In this document: one piece after another, positions 13,433 through 18,267 of the stretch
How the letters are laid out: each line of letters opens with the position of its first letter
Position numbering within the stretch: position 1 is the stretch's first letter
Made by a program: the position numbers and the translations under genes
The notes under the pieces: model-generated
Seen by the model: the letters and a program-made list of their open reading frames with translations, nothing else
The model's database searches: none
What the model was told of the DNA's origin: nothing
Assembly: GCA_977020255.1 (NCBI GenBank)
Contig: CDROCS010000122.1
Location: 186,001 to 250,000 of the forward strand
Reading direction: 5' to 3'
From: Obrimoposthia wandeli
Taxonomy: Eukaryota
Length of the DNA: 64,000 nt

Positions 13433-13825
13433 TCAACCCGGTGGACCTTTAGGATACATGTAAGTATCAAATCCACGATTCCATTCATAACGAAATTGTG
13501 GTTCATCCCGTCGCCCTTTACATTGGTCTTGGTATCTTAACCCTTTAACGCCATAACCAAACGCCTTGTTCACATCGCAAAATGTGTTAATACCGTCTTC
13601 ATAGCCCGCTTGATATTGCTGGTAACTTTCTTGCTCTAGCTTATCAACCTGATACGCTTTGGTTAATTCCGCTTCGGTCTGCATTACTTGGCCTTGTATG
13701 GCATTTTTTTCACCGATCTCAGACCACCGAGGTGAAGATGTAGATGTGTACTGAGCAGCGCAGCCACTGATAATCAGCGAGAAAATGACAATAAACGCGT
13801 TAGTTACGATATAAAACTTCGTCAT
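13433..13825 (-). CDS. Lipoprotein, DUF2799/YfiL-like
   Basis: Lipobox ISGC; YQAGYEDGINTFC and AFGYGVKG...C pattern. Confidence 0.7.
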   Translation of the reverse strand: MTKFYIVTNAFIVIFSLIISGCAAQYTSTSSPRWSEIGEKNAIQGQVMQTEAELTKAYQVDKLEQESYQQYQAGYEDGINTFCDVNKAFGYGVKGLRYQDQCKGRRDEPQFRYEWNRGFDTYMYPKGPPG

Positions 13826-13863
13826 GGCAGCCTCTAATATGAATAAGCAGAAGCTGGAAGGTG

Positions 13864-13894
13864 TTAATTAGGAAGCCATCGACCTCCTAATTAA
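13864..13894 (-). terminator. Hairpin after small peptide gene 1
   Basis: TTAATTAGGA-N11-TCCTAATTAA. Confidence 0.55.
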
Positions 13895-13908
13895 AGTAAC
13901 AAACTGGT

Positions 13909-14097
13909 TCAATAATGTGTTTTACCACCCTTTTGAGCACAGATTGTTTGAGGAACCCAACTCTCAACCGTTTGACCACTTTCCGTAGTCACCACACATC
14001 GATAGATAGGCATTGCTCCAACACCGCCAGATTGCGCAGCGAAAACAGGCACCGAAGACACAATAAATAATGTTATTGCAGTAAGAATATGTTTCAT
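13909..14097 (-). CDS. Small secreted two-cysteine peptide (copy 1)
   Basis: AAGGT RBS, Sec signal ending VFA, paralogous to 16398-16598, flanked by hairpins. Confidence 0.75.
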   Translation of the reverse strand: MKHILTAITLFIVSSVPVFAAQSGGVGAMPIYRCVVTTESGQTVESWVPQTICAQKGGKTHY

Positions 14098-14109
14098 AAG
14101 CTACCTTTT

Positions 14110-14125
14110 TTTGATATTCATCACA
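14110..14125. promoter_or_regulatory. CRP/FNR-like site next to RBS of peptide 1
   Basis: TTTGA-TATTCA-TCACA, 12 bp from the ATG. Confidence 0.55.
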
Positions 14126-14210
14126 AAAATTCTAGCTTAGTTTTTTATAAACTCCATGCAAATAAACATATTTTAAATATTGAATCAGAAATACCAGCTT
14201 CCGTATAAAC

Positions 14211-14237
14211 AACAAAACCGGGTTACAAGAACCCGGC
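14211..14237 (-). terminator. Terminator after porin 1
   Basis: CCGGGTT-N5-AACCCGG followed by TTTTGTT on minus strand. Confidence 0.8.
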
Positions 14238-14256
14238 CATTATTATAAGACGCTGA

Positions 14257-15648
14257 TTATTTCACTGTGAATGGAATAGTCAATGTTACTTTCAAATCAG
14301 TCTCATCTTGGAATGCGTTCGAGTACGGTGCCCAGTTTCCAGCATTTGAGTCGTTAACATAGTATGTGTAGTACATACCAAAATTAGCCCCTTTCAGTGC
14401 ACCGCCTTGAATAGCATAATTTAAGAAAGCACTACCTGAGTATTCAACTAGTTCATCAATACCCGCTTGATCAGACTTAGCACCAAATGCATATACACCA
14501 TTCACACCAGCACTAAAGCCTTGTGCACCTAAGTCAGAGAAGTCACGCGCAACAGAACCGAAGACACCTAGCTCACCATCATGGTTAAAGTCAGAACGGT
14601 TATTCCACCAAATATCGTAAGCACCGTTTGAACCACCATAAACTTCAGTCAGGCGGTAAGCCATGTTACCCACGTTGCCACGAGTATCGCTTGAATCTGC
14701 CGCAGTATATGTCGCTTCAGCACGTACAGAGTACTGGCCGTAAGACTTAGCTGAAATGAATGCTAGCTGGTAAGCCGTTGAGTCGTATTGGTTATCATCA
14801 TCAACAACATAAACTTGTGGAGAAAGGTACCAACCATCAGCCGTTGTGTACTTCACTTTAATGTGAGCATTTTTACGATCGCCATCTGATAACGCTGCAT
14901 AAGCGGCATCTAACAGCAGTCCATTATCAAACGTATAACGACCACCTAATGAGTAAGCAGTGCCTGCATCTTCAGCATCTGAACCGCTTCCAGTACGGAA
15001 CTCATAGCTATCTTTGAACCAAGGTGCGCGATATTCATCAGCAACAACAAGACCTAATGCTAGGTTACCTACATTTGCGCCAATTTCACCACCAGTATAC
15101 GTACCAGCAGCGAAAGACCAGTTAACGCCCATCGCTGTCGGTACAGATGGTTGGAAGTAACCTAATTTAGCAGTTACTGCATCGCCAAATTTAAATTTGA
15201 ATGCAGCAGTCTGAAATGCTCCACCATTGTCGTTACAGCTTGTATCCCATGCACTATCACAACCACTTCTGCTGGTTGGTTCCATGTCATATGGGTTATT
15301 CACGCCCCAGAAGTTCATTTCATGATCAGGAGAAGCGTTTTGCCACAAATCAAACGTTGAATAAACGTTAAGATCTAAACCAACAGTATCAGCTACATAG
15401 CCCGAGTTAAAATCAACAGATAGATACATTGAACCGTGATCTAAATTCGGTGTTTTTGATGTGTCGTTACCATTCTCATCGACATCACCACGGGTACGAT
15501 CACGCATCCAAACATTGAGAGCGCCATTAATGGTTGAGTCTTCAATGAAGCCGCTTGCTTCAGCAGATGGCGCAACCGTTAGCGCCGAGCCAGCCACAAG
15601 ACCAACAACAAGTGTGCTAAGCATTGTACGTTTAAATATTTTTTCCAT
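14257..15648 (-). CDS. chiP: OprD-family outer-membrane porin, E. coli ChiP (YbfM)-like, copy 1
   Basis: GFIEDST start, DFNSGY, VNWSFAAGTYTG, YRAPW, SNGAYDIWWNNRSDFN, FQDETDLK; these match my recollection of E. coli ChiP motifs. Confidence 0.8.
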   Translation of the reverse strand: MEKIFKRTMLSTLVVGLVAGSALTVAPSAEASGFIEDSTINGALNVWMRDRTRGDVDENGNDTSKTPNLDHGSMYLSVDFNSGYVADTVGLDLNVYSTFDLWQNASPDHEMNFWGVNNPYDMEPTSRSGCDSAWDTSCNDNGGAFQTAAFKFKFGDAVTAKLGYFQPSVPTAMGVNWSFAAGTYTGGEIGANVGNLALGLVVADEYRAPWFKDSYEFRTGSGSDAEDAGTAYSLGGRYTFDNGLLLDAAYAALSDGDRKNAHIKVKYTTADGWYLSPQVYVVDDDNQYDSTAYQLAFISAKSYGQYSVRAEATYTAADSSDTRGNVGNMAYRLTEVYGGSNGAYDIWWNNRSDFNHDGELGVFGSVARDFSDLGAQGFSAGVNGVYAFGAKSDQAGIDELVEYSGSAFLNYAIQGGALKGANFGMYYTYYVNDSNAGNWAPYSNAFQDETDLKVTLTIPFTVK

Positions 15649-15669
15649 GGATAACTCCTAATAATAAAA

Positions 15670-15718
15670 TAGCTGTTTTTGTATACATCCTTAAGTTGGC
15701 CGCCGAAGGTCTGCATAC
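15670..15718 (-). promoter_or_regulatory. Conserved 5' leader RNA hairpin (copy 1)
   Basis: GUAUGCA-GA-CCUU[CGGCGGCCAACUU]AAGG-A-UGUAUAC then AAAAACAGCUA; same loop at 18243-18253. Confidence 0.75.
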
Positions 15719-15905
15719 AGGTTATTTATATAACGTTGTTTCAATAGGAGAAGAGGTTACAAGCTTTTTTCATTACAGAAAGTTAACGCAGAAGAATTTA
15801 TGACCGTGTTCAAATCGCATAAATACAAAAATACATTAAAAAAACAAAATCAACAACTTACAAGGAAAACATCAGAAAACATAAACGTTAAAACACTATA
15901 TTGAC

Positions 15906-15921
15906 TGTGAATCAACTCACA
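15906..15921. promoter_or_regulatory. CRP site upstream of porin 1
   Basis: Perfect TGTGA-ATCAAC-TCACA; weaker TATGA-N6-TCAAA at 15799-15814. Confidence 0.75.
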
Positions 15922-16362
15922 TAAAGCCAAATTTAGAAGGCCCAAAGTAGGCCCATCGCACGAGCACTTATAAATATACACTTTGTTTTATATTTATTGA
16001 GAGCGAAACAATGATCTACTTCGCAATTTGAAATAGACACATTGAACTAATTAGCCCGCACTTCTCTAAAATTGACGTTTTTACTTAACACATATTTAGC
16101 ATCAACAATTAAGCTGGATAAGCATTAAACATCGTCAAAAGGAATCCTGCGAATTCACATGCTTCTGATTTCCCTCAGATAACTATTATTGATAGATTGA
16201 ATAAACCATTTTGTTATCAATAGCATTAATAACCATAATTAATTTTATAGAAAGAAGTACGGAATTATAACGAACAAAAGATAGGGCTTAGATAGGAGTT
16301 ATTAAAATAAACATCTTAAGCATCAGGTTAGAACAAGTCATCGATTTAATTAAAGGCTTTAT

Positions 16363-16386
16363 AAAACCGGAGAGTCCGTTCTCCAG
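16363..16386 (-). terminator. Terminator after peptide 2
   Basis: Minus strand CTGGAGA-ACGGAC-TCTCCGG-TTTT. Confidence 0.75.
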
Positions 16387-16397
16387 CATTACACTAT

Positions 16398-16598
16398 TTA
16401 AAAATCAGCTGGATTTCCTTTCCCCCCCAGAGTTCGGCAATTAAACCAAGGTACAAAAATTGTTTCACCGGAAGGAAGTTTACAATATGTTTGGCCAAAC
16501 CCACCGCCATTACCGCCAGAAGAAGAAGCACTTGCAGGTGAAGATATTAGCAATACCATAAATAGACTTGAAGCTAGAAAAGTTAACTTGTTTTTCAT
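16398..16598 (-). CDS. Small secreted two-cysteine peptide (copy 2)
   Basis: GGGGG RBS, Sec signal ending ASA, paralogous to 13909-14097. Confidence 0.75.
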   Translation of the reverse strand: MKNKLTFLASSLFMVLLISSPASASSSGGNGGGFGQTYCKLPSGETIFVPWFNCRTLGGKGNPADF

Positions 16599-16614
16599 AT
16601 AACCCCCATAAGAA

Positions 16615-16731: not shown

Positions 16732-16757
16732 AAGTCAGCCTAAGATAAGGCTGACTT
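16732..16757 (-). terminator. Terminator after porin 2
   Basis: AAGTCAGCCT-N6-AGGCTGACTT then TTATTTT on minus strand. Confidence 0.8.
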
Positions 16758-16782: not shown

Positions 16783-18198
16783 TTAGTTGAAGCTATAAGG
16801 AATAATTACCTGCAAGCGTAAATCAGTTTCATCTGCAGAGTTAGCCCCTGCATATTCATCACGCTCTAGCACTGTACCGTGTAAACGTACTGTTGAACCT
16901 TTTAATGCACCAGCCTGAAGAGAATATGCAACTGTTGCATTAAATGCATACTCGCTTTCATAATCCCAATCGCCCGTAGCTCCTTCAGCTGCAGATTTAC
17001 CACCCGTACCGTAACCAAAGCCTAGGTAGTAATTCCAACCATTACCTTGGTTGTAAGCAACACGGTTGTACCATGATAGTTGACCAGACTTGTTCCAATC
17101 AGATAGTGCATCCCACCATAGAGAGTAATTACCATTCGTCATACCGTAGGTATAAATCATACGAGGGTTAACATCAGCATCGTTATCACTTGATGCGTAA
17201 TTCACATCAGACATCCATGAAACTTTACCGAAGTTTGCATTAAATGACAGACCAGTTGTATAGCCAAGACCGTCATATTGATCATCATCATCTACACCGT
17301 AGAAATCATAAGCAATGGTCATAGTATCGTTAATGTTATAGCGTGCGTATACTTTATAGCCTGTCGTATCAACTTCTTCACGCTTGCCTGAAACAACGTT
17401 ATTATCCCAATCAACATTGGCATAACTAACATCAGTTGTTTGACCCAGACCAAACTGCAAGAATAAATCTTTCGTTGCATCAACCTGTAGACCTAGCGAG
17501 TGAGTGATACCCCAGCTTGTATCAGACCAAAGGGCTGGTGCGTAATCATCTTCACTTAATAACCATGGGGCTGTGTATTGATCAGCAATGAAATACGTCG
17601 CTTTCACTTTACCAAAGTTAGCATTCAATTCTGCACCACGGTATGTACCAGGAACAAAACTCCAAACATTACCAAGGGTACCGTTACCATTAGCCTGAAT
17701 CATACCGAAACGTGCATCAAAGTTTTCACCAGCTTTGAATTTTAACGCAGCCTTGTACAGCTTCAGCTGTTCACCTTCAGCTGAACCCCAATCAAGGTTA
17801 TTACAGGTTGAAATTTCATTACACAGGTACTCACCAGTATCACCATTTATCTGACTGTCGTTATATAGATCACCAGAGTAATAGCCGCCAATATCAGCAC
17901 CTAACCATCCGTCATGATAACCAGAAGTAAAGTCTAAAATGGCATTGTAAGAAGAGTAATTCAAACGGCTCCAAGTATCGCCATCCTCGCCACCAGGCTT
18001 ACCAGTAGTACGAGTACGAGCACGCGTATCAACAATAAAAGTACCATTCAAGGCTGAATCTGCCATGAACTCGTTGATAGCCTCAACGTATTGATCACCC
18101 GCTGCACTTTCTGTCGATGCCTGTACAGGCATCGCTACTACACCAAACATTGCAGCAGTTAAGGCTGAAACCTTAAATAAATTTGAACGATTTTCCAT
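16783..18198 (-). CDS. chiP: OprD-family outer-membrane porin, ChiP-like, copy 2 (divergent)
   Basis: DFTSGY, LYKAALKFK, NVWSFVPGTYRGAE, YTAPW, TNGNYSLWWDALSDWN, DETDLRL; C-terminal aromatic FN. Confidence 0.75.
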   Translation of the reverse strand: MENRSNLFKVSALTAAMFGVVAMPVQASTESAAGDQYVEAINEFMADSALNGTFIVDTRARTRTTGKPGGEDGDTWSRLNYSSYNAILDFTSGYHDGWLGADIGGYYSGDLYNDSQINGDTGEYLCNEISTCNNLDWGSAEGEQLKLYKAALKFKAGENFDARFGMIQANGNGTLGNVWSFVPGTYRGAELNANFGKVKATYFIADQYTAPWLLSEDDYAPALWSDTSWGITHSLGLQVDATKDLFLQFGLGQTTDVSYANVDWDNNVVSGKREEVDTTGYKVYARYNINDTMTIAYDFYGVDDDDQYDGLGYTTGLSFNANFGKVSWMSDVNYASSDNDADVNPRMIYTYGMTNGNYSLWWDALSDWNKSGQLSWYNRVAYNQGNGWNYYLGFGYGTGGKSAAEGATGDWDYESEYAFNATVAYSLQAGALKGSTVRLHGTVLERDEYAGANSADETDLRLQVIIPYSFN

Positions 18199-18218: not shown

Positions 18219-18267
18219 TAGCTGTTTACTTGTGTCTTAAAGGTTGGCCGCCGAAGACATCAAGTAA
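18219..18267 (-). promoter_or_regulatory. Conserved 5' leader RNA hairpin (copy 2)
   Basis: UUACUUG-A-UGUCUU[CGGCGGCCAACCUUU]AAGACA-CAAGUAA then ACAGCUA. Confidence 0.75.

Follow-up and report, generated by a model that had tools for sequence, protein, structure and literature searches.

The window examined here, that is, the whole stretch of 64,000 nucleotides comprising positions 186,001 to 250,000 of contig CDROCS010000122.1 (NCBI GenBank assembly GCA_977020255.1, Obrimoposthia wandeli), harbours two small genes, designated pep1 and pep2, each of which directly follows the gene of an OprD-type porin. Their products belong to an overlooked family of exported mini-proteins, whose adjacency to chitoporin genes constitutes the main new result and suggests a helper of chitin uptake. 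The DNA of the window is bacterial, namely from Photobacterium, with the closest proteins found in P. profundum and P. frigidiphilum, and its genes include gltX, flgT/flgO, ligA, zipA, cysZ, cysK and ptsI. Since this Photobacterium contig is part of an assembly of 1.35 Gb in 6912 contigs, it probably derives from an associated or contaminating bacterium of the eukaryotic host.

Along the minus strand the genes are ordered ligA, porin 2, pep2, a spacer of 750 nt, porin 1, pep1, a ChiQ-like DUF2799 lipoprotein gene and gltX, whereby porin 1, pep1 and the ChiQ-like gene read as a complete chiP-pep-chiQ arrangement. The individual features, with lengths in amino acids (aa) and sources such as the list of open reading frames (ORFs) or the AlphaFold2 (AF2) model in brackets, are as follows:

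16783-18198, minus strand: porin 2, OprD-type, 471 aa, directly upstream of pep2 (NCBIfam ChiP, 1.1e-42)
16732-16757, minus strand: intrinsic-terminator-like hairpin between porin 2 and pep2 (10-bp stem with 5 GC pairs, then a T-rich tail)
16398-16598, minus strand: pep2 gene, 66 aa (ORF list)
16527-16598, minus strand: putative pep2 signal peptide, codons 1-24
16401-16526, minus strand: predicted mature product of pep2, 42 aa
16360-16393, minus strand: terminator-looking hairpin just past the pep2 stop, followed by UUUUAU (-14.6 kcal/mol, z -3.2)
14257-15648, minus strand: porin 1, OprD-family homologue of EcChiP-like chitoporins, 463 aa, directly upstream of pep1 (Pfam OprD, 1.6e-12)
14216-14238, minus strand: intrinsic-terminator-like hairpin between porin 1 and pep1 (9-bp stem with 5 GC pairs, then a T-rich tail)
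13909-14097, minus strand: pep1 gene, 62 aa (ORF list; AF2 model of the mature part)
14038-14097, minus strand: putative pep1 signal peptide, codons 1-20 (invariant Ala at -1)
13912-14037, minus strand: predicted mature product of pep1, 42 aa
13864-13894, minus strand: 14-bp hairpin without U-run just past the pep1 stop, between pep1 and the ChiQ-like gene (-16.3 kcal/mol, z -3.9)
13433-13825, minus strand: ChiQ-like lipoprotein gene (DUF2799), 130 aa, downstream of pep1 (Pfam DUF2799, 5.2e-17)

The sequence evidence shows pep1 and pep2 to be genuine genes, each of which encodes a small protein that starts with a Sec-type signal peptide. Both ORFs are present on the minus strand exactly as they had been described in an earlier note on this DNA, and the alignment and motif given there are reproduced by BLASTP, which pairs SGQTVESWVPQTICAQKGGK with SGETI--FVPWFNCRTLGGK (E 0.007). 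The ribosome-binding site and the downstream hairpin claimed for each ORF are likewise found, the former as the purine-rich strings AGGTAG at 14101-14106 (pep1) and GGGGG at 16603-16607 (pep2). The two products are laid out alike and comprise a signal peptide of 20-24 residues, a flexible Gly/Ser/Asn-rich tail of ~10 residues and a core of ~30 residues with the consensus G-P-x-V-x-C-x-L-[PS]-[DNS]-G-x3-[YF]-[IV]-P-x3-C-x3-G-G-K. In agreement with the Sec-type export proposed earlier, they display the characteristics of Sec / signal peptidase I substrates, namely a basic N-region, a hydrophobic core and an Ala at position -1, which is invariant in 30/30 aligned members, while a lipobox Cys is lacking. 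Moreover, the reading frame is conserved in dozens of species. Synonymous sites are mostly saturated, and the three unsaturated pairs yield dN/dS ratios of 0.22 (window vs. locus L039 of P. profundum ATCC BAA-1252), 0.11 and 0.07, where neutral evolution, the outcome that the earlier note had named as speaking against its proposal, corresponds to a ratio of about 1.

Contigs from marine-sediment metatranscriptomes are weakly consistent with transcription of both genes. Two of them map to pep1 (13901-14134 and 13863-14045) and one, with zero mismatches, to pep2 (16357-16507); contigs also map to the porins, and none is located on the 15638-16138 spacer. Weighing against this reading, environmental RNA libraries can contain DNA, and the contigs show neither strand nor transcript ends.

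The earlier note had spoken of two paralogs, a designation that understates a Vibrionaceae-wide family of 89 clusters at 50% identity. By word-based protein search only close Photobacterium homologues were retrieved, and homologues of pep2 are 86-97% identical in P. profundum and P. frigidiphilum. A search of genome loci with the peptide alignment as query returned nothing useful; when loci were instead approached by synteny through the porins, the small ORF was again seen downstream of the porin in P. obscurum, P. ganghwense, P. sagamiensis, P. sp. Ph5, P. sp. BZF1, P. profundum and Enterovibrio. Invariant positions of the 30-member alignment comprise Ala(-1), both Cys, one Pro and one Gly. 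When 1.84 billion cluster representatives were searched with a profile, the 89 clusters (50% identity) were obtained at E <= 1e-3, nearly all proteins of which are 52-88 aa long. Exactly two core Cys are found in 84/84 short cluster representatives, with a Cys-Cys spacing of 15 residues in 69/84, and aromatic residues are conserved ahead of the first Cys as well as ahead of the invariant Pro. According to a heuristic, 77/79 representatives feature a basic N-terminal region and a hydrophobic stretch, while a lipobox-like string occurs in only 2/84. With respect to distribution, the family is present in 136/201 sampled Vibrionaceae genomes, a narrower model is positive in 32/67 Photobacterium species genomes, and 300 other Gammaproteobacteria, evenly drawn, gave one weak partial match only; among the sampled genomes the family is nearly confined to Vibrionaceae.

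In the databases the family is close to nameless. For 20 clusters that were looked up, the source names are nearly all 'hypothetical' or 'uncharacterized', the exceptions being one 'Secreted protein', two automatic 'DUF333 domain-containing' labels and one 'DUF2282'. The statement of the earlier note that no known family is recognisable holds in that no curated Pfam or NCBIfam model matches the peptides: scans of the two peptides, 30 members and 14 more small members produced far-sub-cut-off noise only, e.g. TrbC, MerP and RXLR. The DUF2282 label, carried by one UniRef entry, was discarded, there being no DUF2282 match in any Pfam scan of members. A plasmid collection contained no family copies, and no description of these genes was found in literature searches covering DUF333, VC0972-VC0974, chitoporin/DUF2057 and Vibrio small proteins. 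Two peculiarities of pep1-like genes may be added. At L069:1483-1740 of the Photobacterium genome G029, such a gene is frameshifted past its YTDR motif and constitutes an apparent pseudogene. In some pep1-like members, encoded at L023:6536-6754, L059:1495-1722 and L061:1495-1713, a third Cys resides in the Gly-rich tail just past the predicted cleavage site (ESCAGG, QACAGG, ESCGG).

The constant feature of the genomic surroundings is porin adjacency, not gltX adjacency. In a context survey of 60 family loci with 1.5-kb flanks, a chitoporin-type porin lies <=1.5 kb from the peptide gene in 54/60 loci, 22 of which feature an OprD-type porin, 30 a Porin_4/DUF2057 pair and 2 both, while the outer flank varies from genome to genome between gltX and NfeD/SPFH genes. 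Three arrangements were observed: an OprD-type porin with the peptide gene behind it in the same orientation, chiefly in Photobacterium; an OprD-type porin together with ChiQ, the peptide gene being convergent; and a Porin_4-type porin together with DUF2057, again with a convergent peptide gene. Orthologues of pep1 are located downstream of porin1-type porins in Photobacterium and Enterovibrio, those of pep2 downstream of porin2-type porins, and in several Vibrio related ORFs converge on the porin-chiQ pair.

The neighbouring porins belong to two architectures, a 16-stranded trimer and an 18-stranded monomer, which are structurally unrelated. The Porin_4 neighbour is a close homologue of the solved trimeric chitoporin VhChiP (PDB 5mdq, E 6e-174), and the OprD-type porins match solved monomeric chitoporins of the EcChiP/SmChiP type (PDB 7vu2, 7vu1 and 7vtz, E 1e-57 to 2e-52). 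Within the window, porin 1 and porin 2 share 28% identity; porin 1 matches NCBIfam ChiP at 4.3e-77 and the ChiQ-like gene the NCBIfam PRK11443 lipoprotein at 4.4e-13, each under the curated cut-off. Porin 2 exhibits long identical runs with Vp0802 of V. parahaemolyticus (PMC11906056, supplement S4) in a comparison made by eye and looks like the orthologue of this protein. By transposon sequencing (Tn-seq), knock-outs and mass spectrometry, the OprD-like porin Vp0802 was identified as a functional chitoporin, which is redundant with the trimeric ChiP and needed for efficient growth on chitin (PMC11906056). That Tn-seq study of V. parahaemolyticus leaves the small genes unmentioned, and no gene flanking vp0802 or vp0760 is listed in its supplements.

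A maximum-likelihood tree of 65 peptides, labelled by the type of the neighbouring porin, requires 5 label changes vs. a mean of 28.4 in 200 label shuffles, none of which (0/200) was as low. The pep1 clade is associated with porin1-type porins in 15/15 cases and the pep2 clade with porin2-type porins in 10/10. Every porin clade has a peptide subfamily to itself, which denotes co-inheritance of porin-peptide cassettes and not a demonstrated co-evolution, because related sequences share labels. In P. profundum ATCC BAA-1252 (L039:7555-9362), a VhChiP-type trimeric chitoporin and DUF2057 take the place of porin1-pep1-chiQ, and chitoporin cassettes are evidently swapped within the ligA-gltX interval. 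Two further loci were encountered in the course of the survey. In the Vibrionaceae genome G174, a tandem pair of peptide genes that differ in subtype is convergent with a Vp0802-like porin (L109:1199-1674). The assembly that contains the window holds a third divergent family-like ORF (G000:C1101:222188-222346, E 4e-8), ~4 kb from a Porin_4-type porin (226445-227080) with 40% identity to the VhChiP homologue.

By this conserved adjacency the mini-protein genes resemble the operational class of chitoporin accessory genes, to which ChiQ and DUF2057 belong. ChiQ (YbfN, DUF2799), encoded right after the OprD-type chitoporin in the enterobacterial chiPQ operon, is likewise a small exported protein of unascribed role. 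It is, however, a lipoprotein of ~110-130 aa from an unrelated family, whereas the mini-proteins are half that size and devoid of a lipobox; in Photobacterium, chiP and chiQ are separated by the insertion of pep1. Similarly, the DUF2057 protein (PF09829), encoded after the trimeric Vibrio chitoporin, is uncharacterised and fixed beside a chitoporin gene, but comprises ~220-250 aa of unrelated sequence and is co-directional with the porin, while the mini-protein gene usually converges on that pair.

With regard to structure, AF2 was run on mature pep1 with the family alignment and returned a model of mean pLDDT 83.5 (core 93), in which the first five residues are disordered. The predicted fold is a beta-hairpin followed by a short helix and a third strand (strands at residues 11-17 and 23-29, helix at 30-35, strand at 39-41), Cys14 being placed in strand 1 and Cys33 in the helix. 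The two invariant Cys would presumably be joined in one disulfide, by which the helix would be fastened to strand 1 of the hairpin. Hence, of the disulfide-closed beta-hairpin put forward in the earlier note, the hairpin is predicted and the two Cys are invariant, but the model adds the short helix and the third strand. The structure prediction and Foldseek comparison that had been proposed as a check gave a confident mini-fold and no match above noise: for the peptide model against the PDB, Foldseek reached E 1.0 and VIA-align Z 2.5 at best. A search of PDB sequences with the peptide profile yielded signal-peptide-like noise only, and the ESM Atlas unnamed clusters only, with scores below 0.9. 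Designed disulfide mini-proteins of the EEHE type (e.g. PDB 5ji4) share element order and size with the model (VIA-align Z 2.1, rmsd 1.9 over 28 residues), but this Z lies at noise level, and being artificial they carry no evolutionary or functional meaning for the peptide family.

Prompted by the UniRef labels, DUF333 domains (PF03891) were gathered from Vibrionaceae, where the examples are lipoproteins or multi-repeat proteins encoded at other genome positions. DUF333 and the mini-proteins are alike in being exported mini-domains of ~45 residues with two conserved Cys, one in a helix that is followed by GG and the other in a beta-strand, and both contain the motifs Y-C-x-L-x-D-G-x-x-V-x-x-W and P-x-x-x-x-C-x-x-x-G-G-K. 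In the mini-proteins, however, the two halves are swapped and the P-to-C spacing is one residue shorter. DUF333 proceeds from N-P-A-x-x-[YF]-C-x-x-x-G-G-K via a strand to Y-C-x-L-x-D-G-x-x-V-E-x-W, which corresponds to the order helix(Cys)-GG-strand-strand(Cys)-strand-helix (model elements: helix 5-12, strands 16-21, 27-32 and 38-40, helix 41-46), whereas the mini-protein runs strand(Cys)-strand-helix(Cys)-GG-strand and thus departs from the DUF333 domain order, its elements being the same but circularly permuted. The Pfam model PF03891 matched no member even at E <= 10, the scan covering the two window peptides, 30 aligned and 14 further members and including two members whose cluster-mates are named DUF333 by UniRef.

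Profile comparison by hhalign is suggestive of a circular permutation. Against DUF333 in native order, the core aligns through the C-x-L-x-D-G hairpin only (10-12 columns, probability 63-64, P 6.5e-5 to 7.1e-5, score 20.9). Against an explicitly permuted DUF333, the alignment extends over 24 columns and spans both Cys, Pro and GG (probability 86.5, P 4.6e-6, score 25.5), while the best score among 300 column shuffles was 18.3 vs. the observed 25.5. Several points tell against this interpretation: the cut points of the permutation were picked after the hypothesis had been formed, the gain over the native order is modest (25.5 vs. 20.9), and with a doubled DUF333 alignment the score equalled that of the single domain, an extension across the junction adding nothing. 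Because of the post-hoc cut and the doubled-domain test without gain, the relation is probable but not proven, and the core is best described as a probable circular permutant of the DUF333 domain. Some Vibrionaceae proteins comprise four tandem DUF333 repeats (L072 and L073; G025:C33 and G026:C48), and such repeats hold a permuted unit across each repeat junction; tandem repetition is a plausible route to the permuted mini-protein. As for DUF333 itself, its model reached Z 3.3 at most against the PDB, where neither a sequence match nor a solved structure was found, and the literature searched contained no account of its function.

On the whole, a role of the mini-protein as an envelope accessory of chito-oligosaccharide uptake is tentatively preferred as the best explanation, and among the options that had been listed in the earlier note a porin accessory factor fits best, by virtue of the genetic tie to chitoporin genes. 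The mature mini-protein would act in the cell envelope and aid the uptake of chito-oligosaccharides, most likely by docking on the periplasmic side of its cognate chitoporin, where it might influence channel activity or receive the sugar chain as it emerges. A porin-specific partner is favoured because the residues common to the subfamilies look structural, while the remainder varies with the porin clade. In a more specific form of this proposal, which we regard as doubtful, the mini-proteins are soluble partners at the periplasmic mouth of particular porins and gate or rectify the flux, possibly with the Gly-rich tail entering the pore. A dedicated small-protein regulator of a sugar-specific porin is not known to us, although no search was aimed at this point. 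A precedent for the mechanism may be seen in the N-plug of VhChiP, described in PMC10406626 as an N-terminal segment that plugs the neighbouring pore and therewith a short polypeptide by which a chitoporin is controlled on its periplasmic side. Unlike the mini-proteins, the N-plug belongs to the porin chain itself, and no sequence similarity was seen between the two; a mini-protein gating the periplasmic mouth would be its trans-acting counterpart.

Several observations weigh against an accessory role in chitin uptake. Across most Vibrio, peptide gene and porin operon are oriented towards each other, and in the window a terminator-like hairpin separates each porin from its peptide gene; simple co-transcription with the porins is therefore improbable, and the peptide genes probably form separate transcription units. 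In addition, 65/201 Vibrionaceae genomes are without a match, and a peptide gene is found within 5 kb at only 15/36 OprD-type porin loci; the peptide is dispensable for many chitoporins. Finally, the matching of subfamilies and porins can be explained by plain co-inheritance of linked genes.

The main rival is a chito-oligosaccharide-binding mini-lectin, whose ligand would be the sugar and not the porin and which would serve as a sink or shuttle within the periplasm or else bind chitin after secretion. It earns this position because the two structurally unrelated porin families to which the peptide genes are linked share only their substrate, and it would accommodate the conserved aromatics before the first Cys and the invariant Pro; small disulfide-stabilised chitin-binding domains are, moreover, similar in size to the mini-protein. 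Nevertheless, it is considered unlikely: the residues conserved across subfamilies (Cys, turn Gly, Pro and GG) look structural, the surface varies by porin clade, which is unexpected for a single shared ligand, and no similarity to a carbohydrate-binding module emerged in Pfam or fold searches. Not very probable either is an envelope protein with a role other than in chitin uptake, e.g. a general DUF333-like periplasmic function, that stands beside porins through linkage within a variable island only. The separate and often convergent transcription units, the location of many members in the ligA-gltX interval, where cassettes swap, and the lack of the peptide at many chitoporin loci are in favour of this explanation. 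On the contrary, neutral linkage does not easily explain that the adjacency in 54/60 loci survives changes of orientation, porin family and chromosomal flank.

Considerably less probable is a shielding function, in which the mini-protein occupies the chitoporin and thereby denies this receptor to the phages or bacteriocins that depend on it. Phages provide known cases of small envelope proteins by which porin receptors are blocked, and subfamilies specific for porin clades with variable surfaces would suit such a role, but the genes are chromosomal, conserved, under purifying selection and not prophage-borne, and no copies occurred in the plasmid collection. The microcin-like or signalling peptide suggested in the earlier note, which is small, exported and Cys-containing, seems equally remote and, as far as a microcin is concerned, is not supported. 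In contrast to class II microcins and double-glycine-leader bacteriocins, the leader is of the Sec type with a conserved Ala at -1, and the neighbours are a porin, a ChiQ-like lipoprotein gene, gltX and ligA, whereas genes for export, immunity or modification are absent nearby. The lack of plasmid copies, the fixed chromosomal position and the purifying selection (dN/dS well below 1) point in the same direction. That the ORFs are spurious and merely overlie non-coding terminator or leader sequence might be supposed from their shortness and their position in AT-rich spacers downstream of terminators. Conservation refutes this supposition, to which practically no weight is left: frame, signal peptide, both Cys and core motif are kept across 89 clusters despite saturated synonymous divergence, and the AF2 model is confident.

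Chitin turnover by Vibrionaceae represents a major marine flux of carbon and nitrogen, and the uptake pathway, encompassing chitoporins, CBP and ChiS, is regarded as well mapped. An exported mini-protein that is encoded beside both types of chitoporin genes in about two thirds of the sampled Vibrionaceae genomes has nonetheless remained without an informative database name. Because it is conserved at chitoporin genes and lacks both such a name and a description in the literature searched, the mini-protein constitutes a concrete and cheaply testable candidate for a missing component. The family is also a clean example of small genes that escape curated family libraries, and if the link to DUF333 were true, it would provide the first genomic context for that orphan domain family.

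A minor observation concerns the leaders of the two porin genes. The window contains exactly two copies of the 11-mer GTTGGCCGCCG (CGGCGGCCAAC on the gene strand), at 15695-15705 and 18243-18253, each being located 45-47 nt upstream of a start codon, one per OprD-type porin. The pair looks like a shared 5' leader element, possibly a target of a small RNA or of another regulator.

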